A stretch of 64,000 bases of DNA from Anthoceros angustus (GCA_010909165.1 VJWM01000003.1:310001-374000), one strand, 5' to 3'; shown: positions 9,344 through 59,738, counted from the first letter of the stretch. Translations and numbers: made by a program. Notes: a model not told the origin generated them from the letters alone.

Positions 9344-12300
9344 ATGCCTCTTTTGGCGGAGCAGCTTCAGCAGCTGCAGAATGGATATCAAGGAGAGGTC
9401 ATGGGGCACAAGAGCAGGTTCTCGATGGACCCGGAGACCATAATAGTGGGAGTCAGGCTGCTAGAGGAAGAGTCGGAACTCATCTCCTGGGCCGTGTACA
9501 CAGCTGCGCGGCCTGGTGACAGCATCATCGCACTCCATGTTCAGAGCTCTCAGGAGCCGTTGTATACGGAAGGTACCTATTTCTCGCCCGGAGCGCACCT
9601 GGAGCGGGGTGAGGTCTGTTCTGGGAGGGATTGGTGTCACAATTCGCTTTCTTGTGGGAACGCAGAGGATGCGGAAGAACGCCCGTTGAGGCTTGCTAAG
9701 GATGTGGCTAAGTCTGCTCTGGTCAAAATGTTGGACCCCTATCTACACCATTGTGCGCAGAAGCAGGTATCGCTCTCTCACGACTCTCAGTTCTGCGGGT
9801 TGGGGCTCGGCTCAACCCCGGCGGTGACATGAGAGGAACGTGTCTTTGGACGCGGAAGTACTTACCGTATGAAAGCGTCGAAATATTGTGCAGATAAAAG
9901 TAGAAGCCAGAATCGCTGGAGGCGTCAGTGTGGAGAAAGTTTTGGTGGAGCAAGCAGATGCACTTCGCGCCACGCTTCTTCTTCTGGGGAGCTCTGGCAG
10001 ACCGCGGCCCTCCTGGTATGCAATTCCTCAATTGCAAATCATGCTCCAGAGCCCAGGGGAAGGATATGGTACCGTTCCTCCATGCCTCTCTGTGTACTCT
10101 AATGTCGGGTTTCTGCAGGTGTTATCAAAGCCCGACCATCTATTGTTCTGACCATGCACCCCCCCGTTGCTCGGTGCTTGTTGTCAAGGACAACAAGGTC
10201 CTCGCGTACAAGGGCAGCACAGACAACACTTTTTTTCCTGGTAATACTATGTTTGCATTCAAGTGAATGTGGTGCGGGGTAATGCGAACACAATGTTGAC
10301 CCTCTAAATATTTCTCGATGTTTCAATCTTCCAGAACCTCAACCGAAACAGAAACCAACTAAGAGCGTTGCAGGCAGCCGTGGATCCTTACCACGGAGAT
10401 TCAAATTCTGCGCTCAAGAACCGGACGTGCTACCAACACCCCTCGACAGTCCTACCAGAGATGGGAAGGATGCTGCCAGCCAGGCCTGGGAGCTGGAGGG
10501 TCTGTCACCGAGGGGAGTTCTGGAAGGCACGGTGGAATCTGAATCGAGCTCTCCGCCCAGCAGCATAACTATGTTCTCCCCAAGCCTTTCAAAAAGACCT
10601 TTTCTGGTTGCAGAGGAGGACACATTGCAGCCATTACCTCCACCCCAACGTCCACTATCGATGGTTTGGAAGAACCCCATTAGGAGGCTACACAGCTTTC
10701 CATCATCACACCGAGTCAAGAAGCTGTTGGCGAATTCCAGCTGCCATTCTGCAAGGACAAACCCAGAATCTGGTGCAGATTCGGGTGCAGAGGACGGTGA
10801 ACAGGCGTGGGATGGGAAGCCTCCTAACTCTCAACCTCCATGGCGCTCCTTTACTTATGGCGAGATTTCGATGGCTACAAGGTCATTCGACCATGGTAAG
10901 TACGCTGAATTTATCGCGGATCTTGGAGTGCTTTTCATTCGTATTGTCCTCAGTCTTACACCTTTCTGTGGTCTCCAGCCAACTTGGTCGGTAAGGGAGG
11001 TTATGCTCAGGTGTTCAAGGGAGTACTACCCAACGGAGAGGTCATAGCAGTGAAACTGCTCACTCGAGAGTCGGAAGAAATGAAGGAGAGAGATTTTCTT
11101 ACGGAGTTAGGGATTATTGGCCATGTCTGTCACCGAAATACCAGCATGCTCATTGGGTTTTGCATTGAAGGCGGTCTTCACTTGGTATACAAGTATTCCC
11201 CACATGGAAGTTTGGCTTCTTTTCTTCATGGTGAGACTAGCAGCCTCTTGCTAATGGTGCACTCCCAGAGCACTGAGCCCATATTGAGTCTAACGTAGTT
11301 GTTGACTTCTATAGCTGGCGGCGGCTCGTCGATGGATTGGGCTGCTCGGTACAAAGTCGCTGTTGGCGTTGCTCATGGTTTGCATTACTTGCACAAGCGA
11401 TGCCCACGACGCATCATTCACAGGGACATAAAGTCATCAAACATTCTTTTGGGACCGGACTTTGAGCCACAAGTAAGAAAGCTTTCCGATGTCGTAGTCG
11501 AGTATCCTAAATGTTTTGTCTAACATGGTTCGAAGGCTAGAAGGCTTATGCGGCTGAAAACCCTGTGCAGATATCGGACTTCGGCTTGGCGAAATGGCTG
11601 CCGGAACAGTGGACGCATCATACTGTGGAGCCTGTTGAAGGCACTATTGGGTGAGTAAATGTCGATGCTTTCAGCTTGTCATTATTTCCAGTCCTCGACA
11701 TGTGATGTGACGTTGTCCAGTGCATCACCGCAGGTATCTTGCTCCTGAGTACTTCATGCATGGAATTGTCGATGAGAAGACAGATGTGTTCGCCTATGGT
11801 GTGGTACTCTTAGAGCTGATAAGTGGCCGACGGCCGGTAGAGGCTACTTCCCAGAACTTGGTGATGTGGGTACGTTCCACCACTTATCCTGTGATGTCCT
11901 GTGCAATGTGTATTTCTTACTTCGGAACGTTGGATCGGCTGAAAGTTTTGATACTGTATCAGGCAAAGCCGTTACTCGAGGCCACCAACCTGCCGGAGTT
12001 GGTAGATCGGAGCTTGGGAACATCTTACGATTCGTCTCAAATGCGAAAGCTGATAATGGTGGCCACCCTCTGCGTCAGGCATTCTGCAATTTGGCGTCCA
12101 AGCATGAAGCAGGCAAGTCCCTTGCTCTGCAGCTGTTCAATCCTAATGCCTCCATGTTGGAGATTCCCTGCTTCTAACAAAAGTGCTGGGATGTTACAGG
12201 TTCTGGACTTGTTGACAGAGGATGCAACAGATTCTGACGCAGTCGGGTCAGAGGAACTGAGCCAACTGGTGAACAAGTCACTCGGCCAAGAGATCACCAA

Positions 12301-12376
12301 CCTTGAATCCGACTACAGCATCGCCACCTATCAAAAGGATCTGTGCCGCCATAGAGAGTTGGCCTTGTGCTTCTGA
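9344..12376 (+). CDS. Receptor-like cytoplasmic kinase with N-terminal USP/adenine-nucleotide alpha-hydrolase-like domain (RLCK-VI/RBK-like), 10 exons
   Basis: Exons ~9344-9766, 9894-10015, 10119-10240, 10335-10895, 10979-11230, 11315-11472, 11571-11650, 11734-11869, 11963-12112, 12200-12376. Motifs: [20 protein letters not shown] (USP-like), [67 protein letters not shown]. Confidence 0.9.
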
Positions 12377-14250: not shown

Positions 14251-15248
14251 TTTACAGGGCCTATGTGCAAGTATGCTTTTGGTTTTTGTTTTGATACGTA
14301 ATACTCTTTGCTGACTGTTGTTTACATTGTAGATAGGTTGTAAATTGCAATATAGAGGATATGTGTGTGTGCGATATATGGATATCTGAAATAAGGCACA
14401 CAAAGAAGAAAAAGACGATAGAGGTTCATCGAACGGTAGAAATCGACAGAACTCCAAAGTACTTACGCTTCCACTAGTTACTACCTCCAGTATTTCTTGG
14501 GATACTACATCTACACACCGATCTGAAAGGTTTATGTTGTTGCATGCCGGTGCTATGTATGCAACTGCTTCGTGCGGTGAACAAAACCGATGGACATTAG
14601 CAGAAATTATAGGTTTGTTTTTCTCCATGTTTTTATTTAACTCATATATACTTACATATGTTCCTTAATGTTTAGCCTACATGGCAGGGTCATGTTGCAT
14701 TTGCTATGGTCTTGGACATTTCACCATTTATGAGAAGTCGAAAGGCCACTAAGTGCCATATGAATTGGTGGTAGTTGTGAACATGTTGGAGAGTCTTCTA
14801 TGAGCTTTCCACGTTGTGGTTTACAAAATGATGATAAGGGGCATATGGTATAAAGTATCAGATAGCTTGGCAAAGAGAGAGACAGAGGAAATGGTACTTA
14901 TGGCAAAAGCATCCTTCGTATTTTATGAGCAAATAGTGATTTGGCCAATTTGCTCTACCCTTGCTCTTGCTCCCGCTCCTCCAATAATTTGTCGGTGTGT
15001 CGATGAGAACATTTTGTGCACTTAACATCAGAAATAGGCTCTTGGCAACTCATGCATTGTAGACAAATTTGAAGATTACATCCTTCGATCTGCAGATTCA
15101 AATATCAAGTGAATTTGACATAAAAGACCATAGCTATAGTGAATTTTACATGGAAAAAGTATCGTATACCTACCATAGCTCCCTCATTAGTTGGAATTGG
15201 CAGCAGAATGCTGCTGAAAGGCTCAAACTTGGTAGAAAATTGTTAGGG

Positions 15249-18200
15249 AACAATCATGTCAGAGAGAAGAAGGTGTGCACTCATGTAACATCTCATGGGA
15301 CTACTAAAACATCTCAATGCACTGCTGCATACTTTAAATTCTAACAAACCTTGTAATCGCACTCCAACATCCCATCGCTATTACGATGGTTTCTTGTAGT
15401 GGACACATATCCTCCTCTAACGATAGTGCATATGACACTCTTTTTCCAGCAGTATTGTCACATGCACAAGCAACTCTTCTGCATCCTGCAAAACAAAGTA
15501 CATCGGTCAAAATCTAAAGTGTAAAACAAGTAATTACAAATCTACATTATAATAACTTGTTGTTCGCTTATTTTGAACTCCAATGCACCTTGGAGACGGC
15601 AAATATAAGATTCAATAATCGTAACTTTTACCTCTGATGTCACTGTGGAGAGATCTATACATCAAAAACAATAGGCCAATTAGTTACACTTGGAACCTAC
15701 TCAAAACCTACAAATTATCTCTCCCCTCACCCTGCATTCACTAATTTATACCTCTAACAACACTTTTGTTAGATCCAAAGGGTCGGTAGTGACCTCATAT
15801 ATGGAAACGAAGAACCTTTGAAAGTTGTGGCAGCTTACAAGTGCCTTCCAAAACAACTTAGCAACCCATCAACAATTTCACCCGAACCTCACAAGCAGCC
15901 ATGGCATTCATGCAAGTATCATTCGTTCTCACCTGCAAAACAAAATGTAACACAGGTATCCGTTGTTGCGGAGGCAAGGTCGACAGTCTCTTCTATCACT
16001 TTGAGCGCCTTTACCAAGTTAGACTTTTTCAACTCCTTCGTCTTCACCTTGGTCTCGTTCATTAATGGCTCGGGCCAACTACAAGTGCAACACAGTGCTC
16101 CAACTCCACTCACATGATTTGTCAGTCTTGAAGATAAAATCGCTACAAAGGATTAGCACGGTAATGCCCAAACCCACGTAGCATGACAGCCACTTCCATA
16201 GCCCTGTCCCATTTGACAGATACATCCACAACAACGTGAGGTCATCAACCGAATGAAGAGCCACAACACCTTTAGCTATCTTCATAACGTAGATGCCAAC
16301 ATTGTGAACCTGACGGAAGACAAACCTTTAACCCGCCACTTCCAACAGCACAAACCTTCTCCCAACACCTAATATGGGGAAGCAAGAAATGACGCCATCA
16401 ACTAACCAAAATGTCAGTAGTATCATACTCTTGCTTCAACCAATCCGCAAGCTTCTATCGGGGAATGACCCCTTTTCTTTGGAGAGTATTTTGACTACTC
16501 TTGATTTGTAAAGATCTAGAAACTTGGCTATTGCTGATCTCTCATATAGTTCTTTTCCTGAAGCAAACATGTTTTGGACCCTTCCTTCGGACGGCGTGGG
16601 TCCTCCTCTTATCTCTTATCCGGGCGGTAGACTCATTCCCTTAGGGTTGTGGCCTCTTTCTCCCAGCACATAGATGCACGAGTCTTGAGAAAAGGTCCAA
16701 ATCATTTTACTGTATAAATGCCCTGTGAAGCGCAGCCTCGAAGGATTGTCCGATTGGATTCAGATATCTTCAGTTGTCAATCATTTTGTATATCTTGTAA
16801 CTTTTGTGAAGTTTACAGCGGAAGTGCAATCTTGCGGGAGTGTTCGATTGGATCCGGATACCTTTAGCAATCAATCATTTTGTACATCTTAAAACTATTG
16901 TGAAGTTTAATGCATAAGCCGACCGTTACTAGTTCCAAAGTAGAGAAAAGTGCAACTAGCTCTAGACCTGCTACTAATTAACATTGAAGTACAAAAGCGT
17001 GATAAATAACCCATTTTGCTCGAGTAGGGAGTGCTACAAACCTACAATTAAGGTGTTGCACTATCTTAATATTGCCCTTCGGCACATGCAATAAAATAAA
17101 GAACCATACATTAGAGATTAGTATAATTCTAGGTTATTTCTTCATTGTTTTATATCCTATAATTAATCCTATGCAAGGATTGATATTAAAAAAATGAAAA
17201 AATATAATTTTTTTTAATGAAATGCAGGGCAGCCTCCCGAAGTCGTTCAATGGGCTTCGGATGAACCTGCACTTTTGCGAATCCTAATGTGCGAAAACTT
17301 TTATGAACCCCAAAGTGTGAAGAACAATCATGTCGGAGAGAAGAAGGTGTGCACTCATGTAACATCTCATGGGACTACTAAAACATCTCAATGCCTGCTG
17401 CATACTTTAAATTCTAACAAACCTTGTCCAACATCCCATCGCTATTACGATGGTTTCTTGTAGTGGACACATATCCTCCTCTAACGATAGTGCATATGAC
17501 ACTCTTTTCCAGCGATTGTCACATGCACAAGCAACTCTGCATCACCAGACAAAGTACATCGGTCAAAATCTAAAGTGTAAAACAAGTAATTACAAATCTA
17601 CATTATAATAACTTGTTGTTGCTTATTTTGAACTCAATGCACCTTGGAGGCAAATATAAGATTCAATAATCGTAACTTTTACCTCGATGTCACCGTGGAG
17701 AGATCTATACATCAAAACAATAGGCCAATTAGTTACACTTGGAACCTACTCAAAACCTACAAATTATCTCTCCCTCACCTGCATTCACTAATTTATACCT
17801 CTAACAACACTTTTGTTAGATCCAAAGGGTCGGTGACCTCATATATGGAAACGAAGAACCTTTGAAAGTTGTGGCGACTTACAAGTGCCTTCCAAAACAA
17901 CTTAGCAACCCATCAACAATTTCACCCGAACCTCACAAGCTGACCATGGCATTCATGCAAGTATCATTCGTTCTCACCTGCAAAACAAAATGTAACACAG
18001 GTATCCGTTGTTGCGGAGGCAAGGTCGACAGTCTCTTCTATCACTTTGAGCGCCTTTACCAAGTTAGACTTTTTCAACTCCTTCGTCTTCACCTTGGTCT
18101 CGTTCATTAATGGCTCGGGCCAACTACAAGTGCAACACAGTGCTCCAACTCCACTCACATGATTTGTCAGTCTTGAAGATAAAATCGCTACAAAGGATTA

Positions 18201-19330
18201 GCACGGTAATGCCCAAACCCACGTAGCATGACAGCCACTTCCATAGCCCTGTCCCATTTGAGAGATACATCCACAACAACGTGAGGTCATCAACCGAATG
18301 AAGAGCCACAACACCTTTAGCTATCTTCATAACGTAGATGCCAACATTGTGAACTGACGGAAGACAAACCTTTAACCCGCCACTTCCAACAGACAAACCT
18401 TCTCCCAACACCTAATATGGGAAGCAAGAAATGACGCCATCAACTAACCAAAATGTCGTAGTATCATACTCTTGCTTCAACCAATCCAAGCTTCTATCGG
18501 GAATGACCCTTTTCTTTGGAGAGTATTTTGACTACTCTTGATTTGTAAAGATCTAGAAACTTGGCTATTCGATCTCTCATATAGTTCTTTTCTGAAGCAA
18601 ACATGTTTTGGACCCTTCCTTGACGATGGGTCCTCCTCTTATCTCTTATCCGGCGGTAGACTCATTCCCTTAGGGTTGTGGCCTCTTTCTCCCAGCACAT
18701 AGATGCACGAGTCTTGAGAAAAGGTCCAAATCATTTCTTGTATAAATGCCCTGTGAAGCGACCTCGAAGGATTGTCCGATTGGATTCGGATATCTTGATT
18801 GTCAATCATTTTGTATATCTTGTAACTTTTGTGAAGTTTACAGCGGAAGTGCAATCTTGGAGTGTTCGATTGGATCCGGATACCTTTAGCAATCAATCAT
18901 TTTGTACATCTTAAAACTATTGTGAAGTTTAATGCATAAGCCGACCGTTACTAGTTCCAAAGTAGAGAAAAGTGCAACTAGCTCTAGACCTGCTACTAAT
19001 TAACATTGAAGTACAAAAGCGTGATAAATAACCCATTTTGCTCGAGTAGGGAGTGCTACAAACCTACAATTAAGGTGTTGCACTATCTTAATATTGCCCT
19101 TCGGCACATGCAATAAAATAAAGAACCATACATTAGAGATTAGTATAATTCTAGGTTATTTCTTCATTGTTTTATATCCTATAATTAATCCTATGCAAGG
19201 ATTGATATTAAAAATGAAAAATATAATTTTTTAATGAAATGGGCAGCCTCAAGTCGTTCAATGGGCGGATGAACCTGCACTTTTGCGAATCCTAATGTGC
19301 GAAACTTTTATGAACCCCAAAGTGTGAAGA
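15249..19330. repeat. ~2.05-kb near-identical tandem duplication (copy A ~15249-17321, copy B ~17323-19330)
   Basis: Both copies start at AACAATCATGTC.GAGAGAAGAAGG and end at CCCCAAAGTGTGAAG; identical small ORFs (MSGVGALCCTC...) occur in both. Confidence 0.9.
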
Positions 19331-19633
19331 CTTTTATCAACCTTATGGTGCAAAGGAGGAGACAGATTGAGCAGGTTAGCCTAGTTTGTGTACATATATA
19401 CAAACTTTCATATTAAAAATCGGTTCAGATGAATATTGTATGAATTTCAGGATAGGAATCGGGCCATGTATGTAATCTACAAGCAGAACTAACACTTGCC
19501 CTTCAGCAAAGCAAAGTCTGCACCGCACACCTTGCTTGGTCTATGATTTCTGCTCTGGTGACTACAAAGTCGCAAGCGTTTCCAAGCTGTGCACGACCCA
19601 GCAGATCACTGGGCACCGGCTAGATCTTTCTTT

Positions 19634-19812
19634 TCACGACCTCACTGCCAACTGCTCAAAAACCTTACGTGCAGTTCTCAGATCACCACATTTTGCATAC
19701 ATGTCCACCAGGCAGGTGCCAACCAGTGGGATAGCCAGCAGTCCTCTCTCGACAATCTGTGAGTGGAGCTGCTTGCCCTTCTGTAAGGCACCAGCGCTAG
19801 CGCAGGCCTTCC
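19634..19812 (-). pseudogene. PPR gene fragment (one L-S motif pair) attached to a duplicate of the 3' flank of the first PPR gene
   Basis: KACASAGALQKGKQLHSQIVERGLLAIPLVGTCLVDMYAKCGDLRTARKVF is identical to the 20496-22781 gene; ~19015-19633 duplicates ~19858-20490. Confidence 0.8.
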
Positions 19813-20495
19813 GCTTGTGCAATCAGCCACTCCGCTTCACACATTCTGTCTCAAACCAAAAGCGTGATAAATAACCCATTTTGCTCGAGTAGGAGTGCTA
19901 CAAACCTACAATTAAGGTGTTGCACTATCTTAATATTGCCCTTGCACATGCAATAAAATAAAGAACCATACATTAGAGATTAGTATAATTCTAGGTTATT
20001 TCTTCATTGTTTTATATCCTATAATTAATCCTATGCAAGGATTGATATTAAAAAAATGAAAAAATATAATTTTTTTTAATGAAATGCAGGGCAGCCTCCC
20101 GAAGTCGTTCAATGGGCTTCGGATGAACCTGCACTTTTGCGAATCCTAATGTGCGAAAACTTTTATGAACCCCAAAGTGTGAAGACTTTTATCAACCTTA
20201 TGGTGCAAAGGAGGAGACAGATTGAGCAGGTTAGCCTAGTTTGTGTACATATATACAAACTTTCATATTAAAAATCGGTTCAGATGAATATTGTATGAAT
20301 TTCGGGATAGGAATCGGGCCATGTATGTAATCTACAAGCAGAACTAACACTTGCCCTTCAGCAAAGCAAAGTCTGCACCGCACACCTTGCTTGGTCTATG
20401 ATTTCTGCTCTGGTGACTACAAAGTCGCAAGCGTTTCCAAGCTGTGCACGACCCAGCAGATCACTGGGCACCGGCTAGATCTTTCTTTTTCATTC

Positions 20496-22781
20496 TCACG
20501 GTCGACCCTTACAACTGCAACAACCAGCTTCAAACCGATGCACACGGTAACCATCCCTTACAACAATGTCTCTCTTTTCAACCCTTGACATGATCTCGGT
20601 GGAACTATGGCAGTCACTGCACATACGTAGATTCTTCGTTACCAGCAGAGGTGTGCCACTTGGAGTGTTCAAGAGACCATACGCCAGAGCTAACTTCTCA
20701 GCATGCCCACAAAGCGCGTCTTCCTTTTCCTTCTCAGACACTGGCTTCAAAACCAACTGAGTGTGTGCTACGTGGCCCCCTTCCTGCTTCAAACGTGCAT
20801 TCGTGCTCTCTACCTTGAGCGCAATATCATCTCTGTTGTCTCCCACTACAAATGTGTGTACCTGCTTCTTCACCTCAATGCCCGCCACTGCAGGCTTCTT
20901 CTTAGCTCCTGCTGCTATTCTCTGTGTTTCAATCCTGTCCACATCGGTCCACATACCTGCATCTGCATAGGCATTCGCCATCAGCACGTATGCGGATGCC
21001 TGCTGAGGCTCCAGTCTAACAAGGCTTTCAAAACACCGAGTAGCCCTTTCTATATCCCCGTAACTTTTGCAGGCATTCAGCAAAGACCTCAACCCCACAA
21101 CATCACTTTCGCCCTCACAGGATAATAGGATGTTCTCTGCCTCATCTAGATGGCCTGCACGGCCAAGTAGATCAATCATGCAACTGTAATGCTTCATAGT
21201 AGGTTTGACGCCATACTGTTCAACCATGGAACTGAAGTGCTTCCGACCCTCATTCACCAGTCCCTCGTGACTGCATGCTCCTAAAATGGAAGTAAACGTG
21301 GTATCATCAGGCTGAATACCAGCGACCAACATCTCCTCAAAACAAGCTAGTGCCTTGTGACCTTCATCACAAGCACCACACCCAGATATCAGGGCATTCC
21401 ATGTCACGACATCCTTTGTGGCCAAGCTGTCAAAAACCTTACGTGCAGTTCTCAGATCACCACATTTCGCGTACATGTCCACCAGGCAGGTGCCAACCAG
21501 TGGGATAGCCAGCAGTCCTCTCTCGACAATCTGTGAGTGGAGCTGCTTGCCCTTCTGTAAGGCACCAGCGCTAGCGCAGGCCTTCAGAAGGCCAGCAAAA
21601 GTGACAAAGTCAGCCACAATCACGCCCTCCTGTTCCATTTGTTCAAACAGAACAAGCGCCTCCTGACCGAGCCCTTGCTGTGCATACCCAGCAATCAGGG
21701 CATTCCATGTCACCACATCCTTTCTGGCCAAGCTATCAAAAACCTGGCGTGCATCTTCCAGTTTGCCACATTTTGCATACATGTCCACCAGGCAGTTGCT
21801 GACAAACAAGTCAGGAGGAATGCCGCTGTGCAACACATCAGAGTGCACTTTTCTGCCAGATTCCAAGTCCGCAGCAAGTGCACAAGCTTGAAGGGCAGCC
21901 AAAAAGACGTGGGCATCCGCCTTCAAACCTGAGCCACACATCTCATGGTACAATTGTATAGCCTCCTTAGGCTTCCCATGTTTAGAATGGGCAGAAATTA
22001 TGGAACTCCACATGAAGACATCTGGTTTGCCTACCCTGGTGAACACATCCATGGCCTCCTGCAGCCTACCTCCACATGCGTACATGCGCAAGATATGGTT
22101 CCCCAAGTATGTATTTGACTCGTACCCGAGTTTGACACACAGATCATGAACTCGTCGCCCCACAACGAGATCCTTTTTAGCTACACACACTTTTAGCACA
22201 GCATACAACAGAAACCGAGAAATAGGACGGTCTGCCTGCACCAGAGATTCCAGTGCTGCAAAGGCCTCAGTAAGCTGACCCTGCTGACATAAGGTGTTCA
22301 CGGTTCCTCCCGTTACCACGCCCATTTCCGATCCTGCACGGCTGCCAGGCTTACCCCGAAAGCTGCATTTAGAAGGAGAAGCACCATGACCCTTCTGCAT
22401 ATCCCAAGAAACGAGCTGCTCATCAACCCAAGCTGGCGTGACTTTGTTGTTTAACCAGAGGACCTCACCGGACCCCTTATGCCGAAAGTCAGGCGAACGA
22501 GAGTGCTTCTTATCTCGCCTGTTGTCCCACCACATGGATGGGTCCAGGAAAAACTGACGCCATAAGAGCTCATGCTCCTGGCGGCAACCATGGCTGGAAA
22601 ATCCTTCCCGAGCTCCATGTTTTGTAGGAATTGCTGGATTCGTTACAGTGCTGCTGGAGGCTTGTTTGTATGCCAAAGGTTGACTCCCTCCCGTGTGGTG
22701 AGCAGGAGCTCCTCGTACAATCCCTGTGCATCCATCAATTTGTTGGGTCCACAACGAATCTGGTGGCGATAATGTGGACAT
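20496..22781 (-). CDS. PLS-class PPR protein with N-terminal OSB-type PDF motif, 11 PPR motifs, E1-E2 and DYW:KP (GRP) deaminase domain; candidate U-to-C editing factor
   Basis: Intronless 761-aa ORF; WWDNR..PDFRHK..LWL..P.WV; L-S-P-L-S-P-L-S-P2-L2-S2; KKPAVAGIEV, HAEKLA..CSDCH, ends CSCKGRP. Confidence 0.95.
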   Translation of the reverse strand: MSTLSPPDSLWTQQIDGCTGIVRGAPAHHTGGSQPLAYKQASSSTVTNPAIPTKHGAREGFSSHGCRQEHELLWRQFFLDPSMWWDNRRDKKHSRSPDFRHKGSGEVLWLNNKVTPAWVDEQLVSWDMQKGHGASPSKCSFRGKPGSRAGSEMGVVTGGTVNTLCQQGQLTEAFAALESLVQADRPISRFLLYAVLKVCVAKKDLVVGRRVHDLCVKLGYESNTYLGNHILRMYACGGRLQEAMDVFTRVGKPDVFMWSSIISAHSKHGKPKEAIQLYHEMCGSGLKADAHVFLAALQACALAADLESGRKVHSDVLHSGIPPDLFVSNCLVDMYAKCGKLEDARQVFDSLARKDVVTWNALIAGYAQQGLGQEALVLFEQMEQEGVIVADFVTFAGLLKACASAGALQKGKQLHSQIVERGLLAIPLVGTCLVDMYAKCGDLRTARKVFDSLATKDVVTWNALISGCGACDEGHKALACFEEMLVAGIQPDDTTFTSILGACSHEGLVNEGRKHFSSMVEQYGVKPTMKHYSCMIDLLGRAGHLDEAENILLSCEGESDVVGLRSLLNACKSYGDIERATRCFESLVRLEPQQASAYVLMANAYADAGMWTDVDRIETQRIAAGAKKKPAVAGIEVKKQVHTFVVGDNRDDIALKVESTNARLKQEGGHVAHTQLVLKPVSEKEKEDALCGHAEKLALAYGLLNTPSGTPLLVTKNLRMCSDCHSSTEIMSRVEKRDIVVRDGYRVHRFEAGCCSCKGRP

Positions 22782-23268
22782 CTTACAGGCACCGCTCCCG
22801 GAAGATGAGACGCATCGCGCACTATGCAGGCTATAGCAGGATGCATAGGTTCTGAGGTGTGCATCAACACACCACCCTCACAAGCAGCGTGCAATAGCTC
22901 GATCGCAAACTAAGCGAGGATTATGAGGGAAATGCAAATGAAAGATTCACTGTTTTACTTTGTTAGCATGGTCATCAGATGCCAAGAGATCTACAAGTTC
23001 CAACGCTACGCATTCGAGCTATCGAGGCATGTTCAGATGCCGTAACCATGCCCCATCCCCTTCACCATTCGCCTTTCACCTCCAAATGAGGTTGGGGTGC
23101 ATGTTCTAGGTGGTAACGCGAGTTGTAGTGCTTGTACAATGGACCCCCACGGATAGGGCTTAGATCCAATGGGGTAGGATCCAGGCGTAAAGTAGCAGGC
23201 GTTCCTAAGGTATGTCGGGATCAAGCGATCAAGCTCATCGCTGATGAGAACAGTTTAGGTCCTTCATC

Positions 23269-26200
23269 TCACGGTCGGCCCTTACAACTGCAACAACCAG
23301 CTGCAAACCGATGCACACGGTACCCATCCCTGACAACAATGTCCCTCTTTTCAACCCTTGACATGATCTCCGTGGAACTGTGGCAGTCATTGCACATGCG
23401 TAGATTCTTTGTCACCAGCAGAGGTGTGCCACTCGGAGTGTTCAAGAGACCATACGCCAGAGCTAGCTTCTCAGCATGCCCGCAAAGCGCGTCTTCCTTT
23501 TCCTTCTCAGACACTGGCTTCAAAACCAACTGAGTGTGTGGTACGTGGCCACCTTCCTGCTTGAGACGTGCATTCATGCTCTCTACCTTAAGCACAATAT
23601 CATCTCTGTTGTCTCCCACCACAAATGTATGTACCTCCTGGTTCACCTCAATGCCCGCCACTGCAGGTTTCTTCTTAGCTCCTGCTGACAGTCTCTGTGT
23701 TTCAATCCTGTCTACATCGGTCCACCTCCCTGCATCTGCGTAGGCATTGGCCATGAGCACATACGCAGACGCACCCTGAGGTTCTAGTCTAACCAGACTT
23801 TCAAAGCACCAAGTCGCCCTCTCTATATCCCCATGACTTTTGCAGGCATTCAGCAAAGTCGTCAACCCCACAACATTCCGTTGGCTCTCACATGATAGTA
23901 GCATCTTTCCTGCCTCATCTAAACGGCCTGCGCGCCCAAGGAGATCAATCATGCAATTATAATGCTCAGTAGTAGGTTTAATGCCGTGCTGTTCAACCAT
24001 GGAATTGAAGTGCATGTAACCCTCATTCACCAGTCCCTCATGACTGCATGCTACTAGAAGACAAGTAAAAGTGGCGTCATCAGGCTGAATACCGGCGACC
24101 ACCATCTCCTCAAAACAAGCTAGAGCCTTGCGACCTTCATCACAAGAACCAAACCCAGCTATCAGGGCATTCCATGTCACCACATCCTTGGTTTCCAAGC
24201 TGTCGAAAACACGTCGTGCCTCTTCCAGTTCACCACATTTTGCATACATGTCCACCAGGCAGGTGCTAACCAGGACGTCATCTAGCAGTCCTCTTTCCAC
24301 AATCTGTGAGTGCAGTTGCCTGCCCTTCTGTAAGGCACAAGCGCTTGCACAGGCCTTCAGAAGGCCAGCAAAAGTAACATGGTCAGCCACAATTAGGCCC
24401 TCCTGCCCCATTTTTTCATGCAGAACAAGCGCCTCTTGACTGAGCCCTTGCTGTGCATACCCAGAAATCAATGCATTCCATGTCACAACGTTCTTTTTGG
24501 TCAAGCTATCAAAAACCACACGGGCATCTTCTAGTTCGCCACATTTTGCATACATGTCCACCAGGCAGGTGCCAACCAGTGTGTCATCTAGCAGTCCTCT
24601 TTCCACTATCTGTGAGTGCAGCTGTCTGCCCTTCTGTAGGGCACCAGTGCTTGCACAGGACTTCAGAAGGCAAGCAAAAGTAACATCGTCAGCCACAATC
24701 AGGTCCTCCTCCTCCATTTGTCCATACAGAGAAAGCGCCTCTTGGCCAAGCCCTTGTTGTGCATACCCAACCATAAGAGCATTCCATGTCACCACATCCT
24801 TTGTGGCCAAGCTGTTAAAGACTCTTCGTGCGTCTCCCAGTTCACCACATTTTGCATACATATCGACCAAGCAGTTTCCAACCACTAAGTTATCTAGCAG
24901 TCCACTTTCCACAATCTGTGAGTGCAGCTGCCTGCCCTTCTGTAAGGCACCAGTGTTTGCACAGGCCTTCAGAAGGCAAGCGAACGTAACATGGTCAGCA
25001 ACCATCAGGCCCTCCTCCTGCATTTGTCCATACAGGACAAGCGCCTCTTGGACGAACCCTTGTCGTGCGTACCCAGCAACCAAGGCCGTCCATGTCACCA
25101 CATCCTTTGTGGCTAAGCTGTCAAAAACACTGCGCGCCTCTTCCAGTTCACCACATTTTGCATACATGTCCACCAGGCTGGTGCCAACCAGTCTGTTCTC
25201 TAGCAGTCCTCTTTCCACAATCTGTACGTGGAGCTGCCTGCCCTTCTGTAAGGCACCAGCGCTTGCACAGGCCTTGAGAAGACAAGCAAACGTAACATGG
25301 TCAGCCACAACCAGACCCTCCTCCTCCATTTGTTCATACAGAACAAGCGCATCTCGGCCACGCCCTTGTTGTGCATACCCAGCAATCAGGGCCGTCCATG
25401 TTACCACATCCTTTGTGGCCAGGCTGTCAAAAAGCTTGCGCGCCTCTTCCAGTTCCTCACGTTTTACGTATCCTGCAATCAGGGCATTCCATGTCACCAC
25501 ATTCTTTATGGGCAAGCTATCAAAAAGCCGGCGTGCATCTTCCAGCTTCCCACATTTAGCATACCCAGCAATCAAGGAATTCCCAGTCACCACATTCTTC
25601 GTGGCCAAGCTATCAAAAACCCGGTGTGCATCTTCCAGTTTGCCACATTTTGCATACATGTCCACCAGCGAGTTGCTGATAAACAAGTTGAGAGGAATGC
25701 CACTGTGCAATACATCATGGTGTACTTTCCTGCCAGATTCCAAGTCTGCAACAAGTGTACAAGCTTGAAGGGCAGCTACAAAGACATGAGCGTCCGCCTT
25801 CAAACCTGAGCTATGCATATCATGGTACAGTTTTATAGCCTCTTTAGGTCTCCCATGTTTAGCATGTGCAGACATTATAGAACTCCACATGAAGGCATCT
25901 GGTTTCCCCACCCTGGTGAACACATCCATGGCCTCCTGTAGCCTACCTCCACATGCATACATGCGCAAGATATGGTTCCCCAAATACGTATTTGACTCGT
26001 ACCCAAGTTTGACACACAGATCATGAACTCGTCGCCCCACAACCAGATCCTTTTTAGCTGCACACACTTTTAGCACAGTACACAACAGAGACTCAGAAAC
26101 AGGACAGTCTGTCTGCGCCAGAGATTCCAGGGCTCCAAAGGCCTCAGTAAGCTTCCCCTGCTGACATAACGTGCTCACGTTGCTAGGAGAGGCACCAACA

Positions 26201-26595
26201 CCCATCTGAATATCCCAAGAAACAAGCTGCTCATCCACCCAAGCTGGCTTGAACAAGCTGTTTAACCAGAGGACCTCGCCGGACCCCTTACGCCGGAAGT
26301 CAGGCGCATGGGAGCTCCTCTTATCTCGCCTGTTGTCCAACCACAGGGAAGGGTCGAGAAAAAATTGTTGCCACAATAGATCCTGCTCCTGGCGACGACC
26401 ATCGCTGGAAAGTGGTTCCTCAGCCACACATTTTGTCGGAAGTGCTGAGTTCCTTACACTGCTGCACCTGGAGACTTCGTTGTATGCCAGCGGTTGGCTC
26501 CCTGCGGTGAGGTGAGCGGGAGATCCTCGTAGAATCCCTGTACACCCACCAATTTGTTGGCTCAAACACAAATCCGGTTGCCACACTATGGCCAT
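23269..26595 (-). CDS. PDF-motif PLS-PPR DYW:KP (GRP) protein, 22 PPR motifs
   Basis: Intronless ORF; ATG at 26595 aligns with the paralog start (the track begins at GTG 26604); WLDNR..PDFRRK..LWL; two SS motifs; HAEKLA..CNDCH..CSCKGRP. Confidence 0.95.
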   Translation of the reverse strand: MAIVWQPDLCLSQQIGGCTGILRGSPAHLTAGSQPLAYNEVSRCSSVRNSALPTKCVAEEPLSSDGRRQEQDLLWQQFFLDPSLWLDNRRDKRSSHAPDFRRKGSGEVLWLNSLFKPAWVDEQLVSWDIQMGVGASPSNVSTLCQQGKLTEAFGALESLAQTDCPVSESLLCTVLKVCAAKKDLVVGRRVHDLCVKLGYESNTYLGNHILRMYACGGRLQEAMDVFTRVGKPDAFMWSSIMSAHAKHGRPKEAIKLYHDMHSSGLKADAHVFVAALQACTLVADLESGRKVHHDVLHSGIPLNLFISNSLVDMYAKCGKLEDAHRVFDSLATKNVVTGNSLIAGYAKCGKLEDARRLFDSLPIKNVVTWNALIAGYVKREELEEARKLFDSLATKDVVTWTALIAGYAQQGRGRDALVLYEQMEEEGLVVADHVTFACLLKACASAGALQKGRQLHVQIVERGLLENRLVGTSLVDMYAKCGELEEARSVFDSLATKDVVTWTALVAGYARQGFVQEALVLYGQMQEEGLMVADHVTFACLLKACANTGALQKGRQLHSQIVESGLLDNLVVGNCLVDMYAKCGELGDARRVFNSLATKDVVTWNALMVGYAQQGLGQEALSLYGQMEEEDLIVADDVTFACLLKSCASTGALQKGRQLHSQIVERGLLDDTLVGTCLVDMYAKCGELEDARVVFDSLTKKNVVTWNALISGYAQQGLSQEALVLHEKMGQEGLIVADHVTFAGLLKACASACALQKGRQLHSQIVERGLLDDVLVSTCLVDMYAKCGELEEARRVFDSLETKDVVTWNALIAGFGSCDEGRKALACFEEMVVAGIQPDDATFTCLLVACSHEGLVNEGYMHFNSMVEQHGIKPTTEHYNCMIDLLGRAGRLDEAGKMLLSCESQRNVVGLTTLLNACKSHGDIERATWCFESLVRLEPQGASAYVLMANAYADAGRWTDVDRIETQRLSAGAKKKPAVAGIEVNQEVHTFVVGDNRDDIVLKVESMNARLKQEGGHVPHTQLVLKPVSEKEKEDALCGHAEKLALAYGLLNTPSGTPLLVTKNLRMCNDCHSSTEIMSRVEKRDIVVRDGYRVHRFAAGCCSCKGRP

Positions 26596-28018
26596 TTCAG
26601 GCACGGCTCTCGGAAGATGAGAAGCAAAGCAGGCTGTGCAGGCCGTGGCAGGATGCCTAGATCCTTAGACCGTGCATGACGACCACCCTTAGCCAGCGCA
26701 GTGCTGATGTGAATTGATCACCGAAGGCGAAGTCAAAGTCACAAAACAGAAAAACGAACCAGCCGAGCTGTGCAATGGCAGGGTGATCGAAAGCAGAGCA
26801 AGGCTAATACGGGGATCGGAAACTGCATGATCCCGCCTGTCTTGTGTTCTGAGCACGATCCATGAAATGCCAGTCGATAGACCTGTGTTGAAAAGCAGAC
26901 TACATATTGTTCTCCTGATGGGCGTGGACGTGTTCTCAGGTTCAACTTCATTACAGAAATGAATACATGTCCAAACCAACTTCAACCTGTGTTCAACTTG
27001 GTTTGGACACATTCGTAGAGTTCGACGTCCCTTGTTCTATAGACTCTTCCGTTTGGGTTCAAAGTATCGTGATGCTCATTGCCTGGGGAAGACGTTTGAT
27101 CTTACAACCATGACTGGGAAGTTGCTTGAAAAGGGCCGGGCGGGGGAAAGGATTTCTTCGATGGAAGCAAACTCTGATCTTCCCTGTCGGTAACACCGAG
27201 GACAACGATTTCTTCGAAGATGTCCTACAGATAAGCTTGTAAGCTGTGAACCACTTGTTCACAATCCTGCTTGCTGACCGGGTTCAAACTCGCCGATAGT
27301 TTCTCTTCAGATCCATGGTTGCATTCTGCTAGATTTCTGAAGAAGACAATCCTAATCCGGTCATGTTGAATTACGACCCAGGTACGCAGAAATTTCATTG
27401 CAAATCCCTCTTGTCCCAGCTGGCCGTAGGAGATTCAACCCCCGCATTCCCCGATTTGAATGTCGCAAGCAACTGCACAAGCTTGCACACGGAGGGTAGT
27501 GCCCCCACGAACGAGCATGCACTGTTACAGGAGTTCCTGCTCCTCCTGGACACATCTCTTTCAAACGTCCTTTCCGAAGCTGGGAGGCAAATAGGACTCA
27601 CTATTGGCATTCCTTCCTTGCACTCTTCATGGCAGAACTGCCATGGCAGCGGCCCGCCTATGTCTATGTATGGATGCCCACCCTTTGGCATCGGGAGAAC
27701 TGCAAATTGACCTCCTTTTGCCAGCACCTGATCCCTCTATATGTTCTACTTTGTACCGATTCTAATAGTTGAAAACCCCACCGGTACAGCCATGGCTTGG
27801 TAGGGTCAGGGAGCAAGTGAGACCAAGATGTTTAGGTAGTCTCGTTTGCTCAATCCCGTTCGTTCTGGCATGCAAATCCGCCCTGAACTTCAGATCATTT
27901 CCTTAGCACAGACCCTCGTCTCCCGCATCCACATCCTCTTGAAAACCGATTGCTGATTCTTCTCGACTCCCACATGCAATATTTCACCTGCTGAGCACGG
28001 GCTAGACCTTCATCATTC

Positions 28019-31000
28019 TCATGGTCGACCCTTACAACTGCAACAACCAGCTGAAAACCGATGCACACGGTAACCATCCCTTACAACAATGTCTCTCTTT
28101 TCGACCCTGGACATAATCTCAGTGGAACTGTGGCAGTCATTGCACATGCGTAGATTTTTTGTTACCACCAGACGTGTGCCACTCGGAGTGTTCAAGAGAC
28201 CATACGCCAGAGCTAGCTTCTCAGCATGCCCGCAAAGCGCATCTTCCTTCTCCTTCTCAGATACTGGCTTCAACACCAAGTTTGTGTGTGGTACGTGGCC
28301 CCCTTCCTGCTTGAGACGTGCATTCATGCTGTCTACCTCGAGAGCGATATCGTTTCTGTTTTCTCCCACCACAAATGTATGTACCTGCTGGTTCACCTCA
28401 ATGCCCGCTACTGCAGGTTTCTTCTTAGCTCCTGCTGCCAGTCTCTGTGTTTCAATTCTCTCTACATCGGTCCACATACCTGCATCTGCATAGGCATTTG
28501 CCATCAGCACATATGCGGATGCCTGCTGAGGCTCCAGCCTAACGAGGCTTTCAAAGCACCGCGTTGCCCTCTGTATATCACCATGAATTTTACAGGCATT
28601 CAACAACGACCTCAACCCCACAACATTACTTTGGCCCTCACATGATAGTAGCATGTTCTCTGCCTCATCTAGATTGCCTGCTCGCCCAAGAAGATCAATC
28701 ATGCAAATGTAATGCCCAATATTAGGTTTCATGCCATGCTGGTCAACCATAGAGTTGAAGTGCTTGCGACCCTCATTCACCAGTCCCTCATGACTGCATG
28801 CTACTAAAACGCAAGTAAAAGTAGAATCATCAGGCTGAACACCAGCTACTAACATCTCCTCGAAACAAGCTAGAGCCTTGTGACTTTCATCACAAGCACC
28901 ACACCCAGATATCAGGGCATTCCATGTCGCCACATCCTTTGTGGCCAAGCTATCAAAAACCCGGCGTGCCTCTTCGAGTTCACCACATTTTGGATACATG
29001 TCTACCAGGCAGGTGCCCAGAATGTTATCTAGCAGTCCTCTTTCCACAATCTGTGAGTGGAGCTGCCTGCCCTTCTGTAAGGCACCAGCACTTCCACAGG
29101 CCTTCAGAAGGCAAGCAAACGTGACATGGTCAGCCACAATCAGGCCCTCCTGCTCCATTTGTCCATAGAGAACAAGCGCCTCCTGACTAAGCTCTTGCTG
29201 TACATACCCTGCAATCAGGGCGTTCCATGTCACCACGTTCTTTGTGGGCAAGCTGTCAAAAACCTCACGTGCACATTCTAGTTTGCCACATTTTGCGTAT
29301 CCAGCTATAAGGGCTGTCCATGTCACCGCATTTTTTGTGGCCAAGCTATCAAAAACCTTCCGTGCATCTTCCAGTTCACCACATTTTGCATACATGTCCA
29401 CCAGGCACGTGCCGACAAGTATGTTATCTAGCAGACCTCTTTCCACTATCTGTGAGTGCAGCTGCCTGCCCTCCTGTAAGGCACCCGTGCTTCCACAGGC
29501 CTTCAGAAGGCAAGCAAAAGTAACATGATCAGCCACAATCAGGCCCCCGTCTTCCATCTGCCCACAAAGAGCAAGAGCCTCTTGGCTGAGCCCTTCTTCT
29601 GCATAACCAGTTATAAGGACATTCCATGTCACGACATCCTTGGTGGCCAAGCTGTCAAAAAACCCCCGTGCATCTCTCAGTTCCCCACATTTCGCATACA
29701 TGTCAACCAGGCAGTTGCCAAGCAGTACGTTTTCTAGCAGTCCTCTTTCCACAATCTGTGAGTGCAGCTGCCTGCCCTTCTGTAAGGCACCAATGCTAGC
29801 GCAGGCCTTCAAAAGGCAGGCAAAAGTGACCTGGTCAGCAACCATCAGGCCGTCCTCCTCCATTTGCCCATACAGATCAAGCGCATCTTGGGCGAACCCT
29901 CGTTGTGCATACCCAGCAATCAGGGCTGTCCATGTCACCACATCCTTTGTGGGCAAAGTGTCAAAAAGTTGGCGTGCCTCTTCGAGTGCTCCACATTTTG
30001 CATACCCAGCAATCAGGGCATTCCATGTCACCACATTCTTTGTGGCCAAGCTATCAAAAACCTGGCGTGCATCTTCCAGTTTCCCACATTTTGCATACCC
30101 AGCAATCAGAGTATTACCTGTCACCACATTCTTGGTGGCCAAGCTATCAAAAACCCGGTGTGCATCATCCAGTTTGCCACATTTTGCGTACATGTCCACC
30201 AGGCAGTTCCCAACAAACAAGTTAGGAGGAAGGCCACTGTGCAACACATCACAGTGTACTTTCCTGCCAGATTCCAAGTCCGCAGCAAGTGCACAAGCTT
30301 GAAGGGCAGCTACAAAGACATGCGCATCCGCCTTCACACCTGAGCTACGCATATCATTGTACAATTCTATAGCCACTTCAGGTTTCCCATGTTTGGCATG
30401 TGCAGAAATTATGGAACTCCACATGAAAGCATCTGGTTTCCCCACCTTGGTGAACACATCCATGGCCTCCTGTAGCCTACCTCCACCCGCATACATGCGC
30501 AGGATATGGTTCCCGAAGTACGTATTAGACTCGTACCCAAGTTTGACACACAGATCATGAACTCGTCGCCCCACAACCAGATCCTGTTTAGCTGCACATT
30601 CTTTTAGCACAGTATACAACAAGGACTGAGGAATAGGACAGTCTGTCTGCGCCAGAGATTCCAGGGCTCCAAAGGCCTCAATAAGCTTCCCTTGCTGACA
30701 TAACGTACTCACACTGCAAGGGGAGTCACCAAGACCCATCTGCATATCCCAAGAAACAAGCTGCTCATCCACCCAAGCTGGCTTGAACATGTTGTTTAAC
30801 CAGAGGACCTCGCCGGACCCCTTATGCCGAAAGTCAGGCGAACGGAAGCTCCTCTTATCTTGCCTGTTGTCCCACCACATGGTAGGGTCCAGAAAAAATT
30901 GACGCCACAAGAGCTCCTGCCCCTGCTCCTGGCGACGACCATCGCTGGACAGTCCTTCCCCAGCCACACATTCTGAGGAAAGTGCTGGATTCCCTGCACT

Positions 31001-31135
31001 GCTGCAGCTGGATGGTGGGCAGTATACTAGCGGTTGCCTCCATACGGTGAGGTGAGCGGGAGCTCCTCGCAAAATCCCTGTACACCTACCAATTTGTTGG
31101 GTCCACGACAAATCGGGTGGCCACACTGTGGCCAT
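28019..31135 (-). CDS. PDF-motif PLS-PPR DYW:KP (GRP) protein, 20 PPR motifs
   Basis: Intronless ORF; ATG at 31135 (the track begins at TTG 31174); WWDNR..PDFRHK..LWL; three SS motifs; HAEKLA..CNDCH..CSCKGRP. Confidence 0.95.
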   Translation of the reverse strand: MATVWPPDLSWTQQIGRCTGILRGAPAHLTVWRQPLVYCPPSSCSSAGNPALSSECVAGEGLSSDGRRQEQGQELLWRQFFLDPTMWWDNRQDKRSFRSPDFRHKGSGEVLWLNNMFKPAWVDEQLVSWDMQMGLGDSPCSVSTLCQQGKLIEAFGALESLAQTDCPIPQSLLYTVLKECAAKQDLVVGRRVHDLCVKLGYESNTYFGNHILRMYAGGGRLQEAMDVFTKVGKPDAFMWSSIISAHAKHGKPEVAIELYNDMRSSGVKADAHVFVAALQACALAADLESGRKVHCDVLHSGLPPNLFVGNCLVDMYAKCGKLDDAHRVFDSLATKNVVTGNTLIAGYAKCGKLEDARQVFDSLATKNVVTWNALIAGYAKCGALEEARQLFDTLPTKDVVTWTALIAGYAQRGFAQDALDLYGQMEEDGLMVADQVTFACLLKACASIGALQKGRQLHSQIVERGLLENVLLGNCLVDMYAKCGELRDARGFFDSLATKDVVTWNVLITGYAEEGLSQEALALCGQMEDGGLIVADHVTFACLLKACGSTGALQEGRQLHSQIVERGLLDNILVGTCLVDMYAKCGELEDARKVFDSLATKNAVTWTALIAGYAKCGKLECAREVFDSLPTKNVVTWNALIAGYVQQELSQEALVLYGQMEQEGLIVADHVTFACLLKACGSAGALQKGRQLHSQIVERGLLDNILGTCLVDMYPKCGELEEARRVFDSLATKDVATWNALISGCGACDESHKALACFEEMLVAGVQPDDSTFTCVLVACSHEGLVNEGRKHFNSMVDQHGMKPNIGHYICMIDLLGRAGNLDEAENMLLSCEGQSNVVGLRSLLNACKIHGDIQRATRCFESLVRLEPQQASAYVLMANAYADAGMWTDVERIETQRLAAGAKKKPAVAGIEVNQQVHTFVVGENRNDIALEVDSMNARLKQEGGHVPHTNLVLKPVSEKEKEDALCGHAEKLALAYGLLNTPSGTRLVVTKNLRMCNDCHSSTEIMSRVEKRDIVVRDGYRVHRFSAGCCSCKGRP

Positions 31136-40084: not shown

Positions 40085-41356
40085 TTAAACCAAGGAGTCC
40101 AACCTGGGCTCAAATGCAACCCCCAGTAACCCGTTGGATTCCATGTTCTGAATTGTGCAACTGGGTAACCACTGCCATAGATCCTTCCCAAAATCATACA
40201 TTAGAGTGTTCCGGGAATGGGTCTCGTGAAAGCAGATAACATCGTCCTTCCCAACACAAAGGAAGTGAAAGGCTGCCGACTGAAAGAGCATCTTAAAATA
40301 CTCCTCAGGCATTCTCCGTATCTCCAAACACGTTCTCTGTACCAGATCCAACTCCCAAACGTGAACGCTTTCAAGCATTCCAAACTTCTCTATACCGCCA
40401 ACCATGATCAAGCTCCCTCGCCGCTCCAGCAGATCACAAGTGGTGAGGGAAGGAGGAAGAGGTATCTCGGTGTCGTGCCATGACCCCGCTTCCAGGTTGA
40501 AAGCTACAATGCCATGGGGACCATATGTTGTACAATATAGAAAGCCATTCAGGAAGGCACCTCCACAAACAAGAGCACTTCGTCTGTGAAGAGTGCCAGT
40601 CATAGACCAGAAGTTGGTTTCTGAGTCATAAACCTGTGAGGTCACAAAATCGCCGTCCTGGGCCACAACTATTTTATAGGCCTTCTTATCCCTTCGCATC
40701 ACCATGCCCAACACGTAGGGTGACTTCATGTAGAGCATCGGTGGTAGCTTCCGTTGCTCCCTTCGCATCGGATTCGACACAAACAGAGTGTGCAGCTGGG
40801 CTCCCATTCCTTGCAGACACATCAAGCCTCCTGAGGTTGCGAGTACATTCACTGGGCCAGCACTAGGATATGACAGAAAATTTGAAAAAGGTATTCCATG
40901 CCAAGTGTTGGAACCTAGATTGTATGCCGCACCCACTTGATGCTGGGAGAAGCCTGTAAACATGAGGATGTAAAGCCCTTGAGATGGAACTCTGCACAGC
41001 GAATCCAAGTAGGGTTTGGAGTGCATCAAAGAGTTCCATCTTCTGCACACACACCTGAAGCGGAAGAAGGCATCCAAAGGTAACCAGGCCAAGATACAAT
41101 CTACCAGATGCTCTGGTAACAGACCCCACACCCTCTCATCCAAACAAGCTCCAGTCTTCATACACTGTGCGCCAGCGTGTGGTACTCCCTCAGAGTGAGA
41201 AGCGGACGGAGACAAAGGTTTCACCACCTTAGCCCGACTGCGCTTCCCACTGTCAAGCGAGAGATTGGCCAGCCGCCGGACGACCTCAGGGGAGGTGGAG
41301 TGCAGATCGTGGACTCTGCTATCCTTCGAGGCATCAAGCAGCAACTTCTCATCCAT
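40085..41356 (-). CDS. F-box protein with C-terminal kelch-like/F-box-associated beta-propeller, single exon, 423 aa
   Basis: LDERVWGLLPEHLVDCILAWLP..FFRFRCVCRRWNSL F-box; LATSGGLMC..VSNPM..LPPM; VYDSETNFW; ends AFEPRLD. Confidence 0.92.
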   Translation of the reverse strand: MDEKLLLDASKDSRVHDLHSTSPEVVRRLANLSLDSGKRSRAKVVKPLSPSASHSEGVPHAGAQCMKTGACLDERVWGLLPEHLVDCILAWLPLDAFFRFRCVCRRWNSLMHSKPYLDSLCRVPSQGLYILMFTGFSQHQVGAAYNLGSNTWHGIPFSNFLSYPSAGPVNVLATSGGLMCLQGMGAQLHTLFVSNPMRREQRKLPPMLYMKSPYVLGMVMRRDKKAYKIVVAQDGDFVTSQVYDSETNFWSMTGTLHRRSALVCGGAFLNGFLYCTTYGPHGIVAFNLEAGSWHDTEIPLPPSLTTCDLLERRGSLIMVGGIEKFGMLESVHVWELDLVQRTCLEIRRMPEEYFKMLFQSAAFHFLCVGKDDVICFHETHSRNTLMYDFGKDLWQWLPSCTIQNMESNGLLGVAFEPRLDSLV

Positions 41357-44408: not shown

Positions 44409-45065
44409 ATGGAGATCTGGGCAGTGGGAGTGGTGCTTGTGCTGGGACTGATCGTGCTATGGGCCGCCAAGATCCTGAGCACAAGCTTGACGATGCGTGC
44501 TAGGGCCCGAGGCAGCGCCAGATCCCGCGCCGGCCGGCACTTCGTGAAGGCAGCACAGCTGCTGTCACAGGCCAAGGCGGGAGGCGGAAACCGCAACGCA
44601 TACAGGGAGGCCATCAAGGAGGCGGACGTGGCCATTTCTCTGGATCCCAAAGACGCTGCGAGTTACATCGTCAAGAGCCTCGCTTTGGAGCAGCTTGGCC
44701 AGCAAACAGCAGCGTTGCGCTACATGAGTGTAGCACTAGCTACGCCTGTTGTGCGCTCGCTCACGCCGGAGGATAAGGCGGATGCGCTGGCTAAGCGTGC
44801 TGGGATGCTGCTAGATCAGTCCCGGGGAAAGAAGAGCTTGCAGGCTGCTATTGCGGATCTGGAGGAGGCCGCTGAGTTGCAGCCGTTGAATGTCAAGGTG
44901 CTGTGTGCGCTGGGAGCTTGTTATGAGCGGCGGGGGAGCGGGTTCCGTGGCCAGGCGCTGGAGGCATATGAGAAGGCGCTGCTTATTGACTCGCAGCTGC
45001 CGGACGCCAGGGCTGCTGTCAACAGACTGCAAGCCGCTTCTGGTCCCGGTTGCAGGCGCTCCTAG
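44409..45065 (+). CDS. Single-exon TPR-repeat protein with N-terminal transmembrane anchor, 218 aa
   Basis: Hydrophobic IWAVGVVLVLGLIVLWAA; TPR-like EADVAISLDPKDAASYIVKSLALEQLG, AIADLEEAAELQPLNVKVLCALGACYE, ALEAYEKALLID. Confidence 0.85.
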   Translation: MEIWAVGVVLVLGLIVLWAAKILSTSLTMRARARGSARSRAGRHFVKAAQLLSQAKAGGGNRNAYREAIKEADVAISLDPKDAASYIVKSLALEQLGQQTAALRYMSVALATPVVRSLTPEDKADALAKRAGMLLDQSRGKKSLQAAIADLEEAAELQPLNVKVLCALGACYERRGSGFRGQALEAYEKALLIDSQLPDARAAVNRLQAASGPGCRRS

Positions 45066-59730: not shown

Positions 59731-59738
59731 AATAGATG

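Follow-up and report, generated by a model that had tools for sequence, protein, structure and literature searches.

An OSB-type PDF domain ahead of the PPR array in three tandem DYW:KP genes and in PLS-PPR proteins of other seedless plants

Why would an RNA-editing factor carry a domain known from organellar DNA-binding proteins? The question is raised by a 64,000-nt stretch of DNA (the window) in which a sequence-only reading had noticed three tandem PPR genes, here called A to C, each encoding a motif that resembles the C-terminal PDF motif of the OSB proteins, which bind single-stranded DNA in plant organelles. We address here what this motif is, where else it occurs, how it may have come to stand before a PPR array, and what it might do there.

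Three intact editing-factor genes with the motif in frame

Genes A to C are whole, intronless open reading frames lying in tandem on the minus strand and uninterrupted from the presequence to the DYW domain; their start ATGs were picked by alignment among the paralogs.

20496..22781, minus strand: gene A, 761 aa; presequence, PDF domain, PLS-type PPR array, E1/E2 motifs and DYW:KP domain (GRP); intact, intronless
22569..22781, minus strand: gene A N-terminus of about 70 aa under weak constraint, a candidate peptide for organelle targeting
22401..22568, minus strand: gene A PDF domain, residues 72-127 (72.8 bits; predicted fold)
20898..22304, minus strand: gene A PLS-type PPR array and E motifs (Pfam and motif reading)
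20496..20897, minus strand: gene A DYW:KP domain, 133 aa, with HAE at 65, Lys88, CxxC and GRP end
23269..26595, minus strand: gene B, 1108 aa from the paralog-aligned ATG; intact, intronless, architecture as gene A
26212..26379, minus strand: gene B PDF domain (63.6 bits)
23671..26181, minus strand: gene B PPR array of PLS type, SS motifs included, and E motifs
23269..23670, minus strand: gene B DYW:KP (GRP) domain
28019..31135, minus strand: gene C, 1038 aa from the paralog-aligned ATG; intact, intronless, architecture as gene A
30746..30913, minus strand: gene C PDF domain (68.5 bits)
28421..30715, minus strand: gene C PPR array of PLS type, SS motifs included, and E motifs
28019..28420, minus strand: gene C DYW:KP (GRP) domain

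Pfam recognizes a PPR array, an E motif and a DYW domain in each protein, and the P-L-S array, E motifs and DYW domain in one frame are the make-up of PLS-class editing factors. The DYW domains have 133 residues with a KP box at the start, HAE at 65, Lys88, CxxC and a GRP end, which places them in the GRP subgroup of DYW:KP domains (132-133 aa) under the definitions that we took from the literature (PMC9478123, PMC11845758). Since GRP is described as a hornwort variant of DYW:KP (PMC9478123), the window is most likely hornwort nuclear DNA.

The three copies share about 80-88% of their DNA sequence, upstream sequence included, and contigs from a sample of the same organism match parts of the region without differences, intergenic DNA among them. 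Gene B has the longest PPR array; gene A has the shortest, and its linker after the PDF domain is 22 residues longer. Code pairs in the P and S motifs are normal (ND, TD, TN, SN and NN) and follow one another in orders that differ between the genes, so that their RNA targets probably differ as well. Near the end of the gene C array (about 28950-29050), an L motif lacks one residue and Pro replaces the usual Ala in the S motif after it, which may be a mild defect. Before the PDF domain stand 68-71 residues, 12-16 of them Ser or Thr, with few charges in the first 40, a composition that makes a transit-peptide-like role plausible.

The motif lies between this N-terminal region and the first PPR motif of all three proteins, within about 15 nt of the positions first estimated. 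Its general form was also as described by the sequence-only reading, except that the spacer from DNR to PDF is 8 residues in every copy and not 8-9; in addition, two residues separate LDP from the following W. In all three genes the motif shares its reading frame with the PPR array and with the DYW domain, and a frame artefact was rejected. Removal by splicing was likewise rejected, the frames being open with no intron required.

The motif is a PDF domain of OSB type

Each protein has one copy of a 56-residue PDF domain. All 14 of the near-invariant columns in an alignment of 113 motifs are kept in genes A to C, and the conserved W, WDNR-K, PDF-K, LW and P-W residues are present in the three copies. 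With HMMER, a profile of these copies retrieved 717 proteins from a 50%-identity library; among those examined, 81 had an OB/SSB-like region and 15 had PPR arrays, with no overlap between the two groups. Several of the OB/SSB-bearing relatives are named OSB1 or OSB3 by their source and match the SSB family. In the reverse direction, an HMM built solely from 154 PDF motifs of OB-fold-bearing proteins and searched against the six-frame window scored 72.8 (A), 68.5 (C) and 63.6 (B) bits. The next-best match in the window reached 8.6 bits, and a chance match was rejected on this difference. Single-sequence queries with OSB1 and OSB3 match the window motifs too.

Other searches with the motif were less informative. 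Pfam has no model for it, and word-indexed searches with the motif alone found nothing, a limit of sensitivity given the 717 proteins found by HMMER. No meaningful match (best Z 2.8) came from searching PDB by sequence, from Foldseek runs on PDB and viral models or from a wide VIA search, and weak matches to colicin E5 and PHROG were regarded as noise. A language-model search returned a single match, to a phage (0.77).

AlphaFold (AF2) predicts a small domain made of a helix, short strands and a helix (pLDDT 94). In the ESM Atlas this model matches an SSB/OSB cluster with a TM of 0.95 and three PPR clusters of 127, 57 and 63 members with TM 0.84-0.93; both sides of these comparisons are predicted models, and the input alignment included OSB motifs. 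Among solved structures no clear match was found. Two Atlas clusters of hypothetical phage proteins also match the model (TM 0.75 and 0.67, 57 residues), a hint at a possible phage origin of the fold; a Foldseek search against viral models did not confirm the phage-like match.

Together, the OSB-only profile, the predicted fold and a common intron position (see below) agree in identifying the motif as an OSB-type PDF domain, as had been proposed. The proteins themselves were rejected as OSB proteins, since they lack the SSB/OB fold and carry the PDF domain at the N-terminal side, and not in the OSB arrangement of an OB-fold-like domain followed by a C-terminal PDF.

Elsewhere, four to eleven tandem PDF domains without an OB fold occur in the dinoflagellate Cladocopium and the volvocine alga Astrephomene (P0013, P0007, P0002 and P0023). 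Judging by such architectures, the life of the PDF domain is wider than the OSB proteins. In a Coptis gene model (P0050) three PDF motifs are joined to a kinesin domain, probably through merged annotation.

The domain occurs on editing factors of several C-terminal classes

The sequence-only reading held that standard PLS-PPR editing factors carry no such domain. This is too broad for seedless plants, where fern, Selaginella and moss-like fusions were found. A PDF domain followed by a PLS array is present in Ceratopteris, Adiantum, Pteridium (transcript contigs) and Selaginella, and the full-length fern and Selaginella fusions stop after the E motifs, with no DYW domain. In two fern-type proteins, P0004 and P0041, the PDF is present two or three times. 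When metagenomes were scanned with a moss-like copy, 51 loci were obtained, nearly all with the PDF directly before a PLS array; judging by the accession series and the style of the PPR sequences, these loci probably come from Sphagnum-associated samples. On three moss-like contigs (L035-L037) the PDF-headed array ends in a canonical DYW:PG domain with PG box, HSE, CGDC and DYW, which by these signatures is of C-to-U type. PDF and PPR are found in one frame in transcribed relatives, namely the Pteridium transcript contigs and L012, the spliced form of L039. At L006 (8340-10845), a PLS-PPR ORF whose DYW-like end is divergent (HVE, CQDC, RRN) comes after a short ORF that contains the PDF alone, and candidate GT-AG joins would fuse the two.

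Within the GRP subgroup, P0082 and P0163 also have the domain and P0164 has none. P0082 (L001 2709-4970) is a natural decay variant in which the PDF signature has degenerated, with RDF for PDF and an altered WDNR.

Because the domain sits on DYW:KP, DYW:PG and DYW-less proteins alike, it is, as far as this distribution tells, independent of the direction of editing, and the special tie to U-to-C editors that was first suspected does not hold. A PDF that forms part of the DYW:KP reverse-editing mechanism would be in keeping with its presence in genes A to C, P0082 and P0163, and natural KP proteins have not been shown to be active (PMC11845758). However, the domain also accompanies canonical DYW:PG (L035-L037), in mosses and Selaginella, and is absent from P0164, and designer GRP proteins edit U to C without it (PMC9478123). 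We therefore regard a U-to-C-specific module as extremely improbable, and as an exclusive role it is contradicted by the distribution and by the designer proteins. The same two observations, a GRP protein without PDF and designer GRP editors that work without one, mean that the domain is dispensable for catalysis (PMC9478123).

An intron shared with OSB1 points to an OSB-type source and an old fusion

In the moss-like fusions, whose exons were joined by script for intron mapping, the tree and pN/pS, a GT-AG phase-0 intron splits the motif after WDNRxxK. Castilleja OSB1 and the Selaginella fusion gene each carry an intron that agrees with this one in codon boundary and in phase. This position common to OSB1 and the fusions is strong evidence for an OSB-type gene as the source of the PDF domain and for an old fusion. 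The capture would have taken place early in land-plant history, and since then the PDF would have been passed down within one lineage of PLS-PPR genes, irrespective of what stands at their C-terminus. Few branches are supported in a tree of 86 PDF motifs, which is mostly unresolved and neither shows nor excludes a single origin.

Genes A to C and a Ceratopteris fusion (gene length equal to coding length) have no motif intron, which, read against the genes above, genes A to C have lost. Spread by retroposition has been reported for PPR genes of these lineages (PMC13386178), and the missing intron fits retroposition followed, in the window, by tandem duplication.

The domain is kept by purifying selection

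The motif had been said to be much better conserved among the paralogs than its flanks. This is true only of the immediate flanks, with 79-86% identity in the motif against 56-67% in the upstream N-terminal region and 55-64% over the short linker; conservation is as high in the first PPR motifs (81-85%) and higher in the E/DYW part (87-94%). Pooled pN/pS among genes A to C follows the same order: 0.84 in the N-terminal region, 0.37 in the motif, 0.36 in the first PPR motifs and 0.17 in DYW. The motif ratio, rather than being near 1, departs from the neutral expectation (p=0.028; three sequences), and among seven moss-like paralogs it is 0.25. The PDF domain is thus under purifying selection, with a constraint about equal to that of the RNA-reading repeats.

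These values bear on whether the domain could be a passenger, brought in when a PPR gene took over an OSB-type gene's 5' exons and targeting sequence, and kept with little function in the recent hornwort expansion. Some observations leave room for this: in the window, N:S counts of motif and N-terminus do not differ significantly among the three sequences (Fisher p=0.24), dN/dS between genes B and C is 0.8, at least one GRP protein (P0164) does without the domain and its signature has decayed in P0082. Against it stand the low ratio among the moss-like paralogs, the two or three copies in P0004 and P0041, and a PDF identity of about 45-60% kept across mosses, lycophytes, ferns and hornworts. 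Taking both sides together, a mere passenger seems to us quite improbable.

A built-in single-strand-binding helper as the favoured role

PPR motifs bind RNA with their N-to-C order running along the 5'-to-3' direction, and the DYW domain acts just downstream. We tentatively favour, just short of calling it probable, the view that the PDF serves as an inbuilt helper that binds single strands without regard to sequence and lies on the 5' side of the RNA held by the array. We read genes A to C as tandem-duplicated, intron-free organellar editing factors of the hornwort GRP (DYW:KP) type. Their PPR array would read a specific RNA sequence and the DYW:KP domain would most likely turn U to C via Lys88; this residue is required for the U-to-C reaction (PMC11845758), and designer GRP proteins carry out that conversion (PMC9478123). 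After import the presequence would be removed, and the PDF would then stand before the PPR superhelix at its N-terminal end, beside the RNA's 5' flank, held by a variable linker and distant from the active site. From this place its binding of single-stranded nucleic acid, with no preference for sequence, could add avidity or prevent the flank from folding, akin to the separate RNA-binding accessory factors of seed plants, and the domain would influence the efficiency of editing, not its direction. The PDF motif of OSB1 alone is sufficient for ssDNA binding (PMC6963530). Besides its dispensability for catalysis, two further points count against a helper: the accessible literature documents no case of a PDF domain that binds RNA, and the motif in genes A to C is about charge-neutral, with 8-9 basic and 8 acidic residues.

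The main rival is that the PDF keeps the ssDNA specificity of OSB proteins and holds the editor near organellar DNA, at nucleoids or transcription bubbles, where nascent transcripts could be edited before they fold or are translated. Indeed, ssDNA is the only documented ligand of PDF domains (PMC6963530, PMC13393729), the residues of the window copies are fully OSB-like and many PPR proteins are nucleoid-associated (PMC10226603). However, most fusions have a single PDF, and abundant OSB, SSB and Whirly proteins would presumably compete for ssDNA. Such a tether is possible, if on the unlikely side; it is compatible with a helper role, and both may hold.

Less likely still, in our view, is a module for protein interaction or folding, which would cap or stabilise the first PPR motifs, oligomerise or recruit a partner, such as a DYW donor for DYW-less members or a factor that resolves a Lys88-RNA adduct. 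Many fusions are indeed DYW-less and in need of a partner, the conserved core is rich in aromatic residues without being strongly basic, AtOSB2 forms a tetramer (PMC6963530) and seedless plants have no MORF proteins (PMC13386178). Against this, the linker from the PDF to the first PPR motif varies from 11 to more than 30 residues even among genes A to C, which argues against a packed cap, and the surface is not visibly unlike that of the nucleic-acid-binding OSB copies.

Relation to known systems

By profile, predicted fold and intron position, the domain is the same 50-56 residue PDF domain as in OSB1-4/PTAC9. In those proteins, however, it is C-terminal and often repeated, whereas genes A to C have a single N-terminal copy and no OB fold, and the host here is an RNA-editing PPR protein. 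With the hornwort GRP DYW:KP factors on which the designer proteins KP2 and KP3 are based, genes A to C share the PLS array, E motifs and 133-aa DYW features; they differ in the extra folded domain before the PPR array, which is omitted in the designer proteins. The accessible literature on GRP-type factors makes no mention of an additional N-terminal domain. An extra nucleic-acid-binding or helper module is likewise known from RRM-PPR (PPR4), RRM-DYW and PPR-SMR proteins and from the separate helpers ORRM, MORF and OZ, but the PDF module, absent from Pfam, derives from the machinery of DNA maintenance and stands at the head of a large PLS subfamily.

The sequence-only reading knew of no description of this architecture, and we found no paper in the searchable literature that joins PDF/OSB with PPR/DYW, although the original OSB1 paper or the Anthoceros editing-factor paper may mention it in passing. 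A 2026 survey of PPR fusions covers MORF, RRM and zinc-finger domains, and the term "single-stranded" is absent from its text (PMC13386178); a 2026 OSB survey required PDF and OB fold together in the proteins it retained and says nothing of PPR (PMC13393729); a review of moss PPR proteins names only other added domains (PMC9459714). Surveys have missed the fusion because Pfam lacks a model of the PDF domain and searches for OSB proteins ask for an OB fold as well (PMC13393729). Thus, the parts are known, and their combination is apparently undescribed, ancient and widespread, with no special tie to reverse editing.

This combination links organellar DNA maintenance to RNA editing, and the PDF marks a PLS-PPR lineage that mosses, lycophytes, ferns and hornworts have in common, and it is in these groups that editing is heaviest. 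More speculatively, and in our view less likely than not, these proteins could form a large, ancient and overlooked PLS-PPR class of seedless plants whose own OSB-derived single-strand-binding domain couples editing to the nucleoid or replaces the helpers of seed plants; its omission would then be one reason why natural DYW:KP proteins are unproven and designer ones poor. Genes A to C, three whole frames with a removable module, are ready natural GRP candidates. Should the PDF increase efficiency, adding it to designer PPR editors would be useful.

Other features of the window

A 10-kb GC-rich stretch (60-64%) at 50000-60000 has a strong plus-strand purine skew, with an AT skew of up to 0.38; the ORFs tested there have no Pfam match. 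Just downstream of gene A, the segment 15248-20489 contains a recent tandem duplication (15248-17323 and 17322-19330, 96% identical) and a second repeat (19014-19634 and 19857-20489, 97%). A 170-nt PPR fragment at 19637-19811 is 97.6% identical to gene A at 21421-21585. The window further contains the following.

11720-12376: protein-kinase fragment
40085-41356: F-box/KIB1-4 beta-propeller gene
44409-45065: TPR exon
63162-63956: Copia-type reverse-transcriptase fragment
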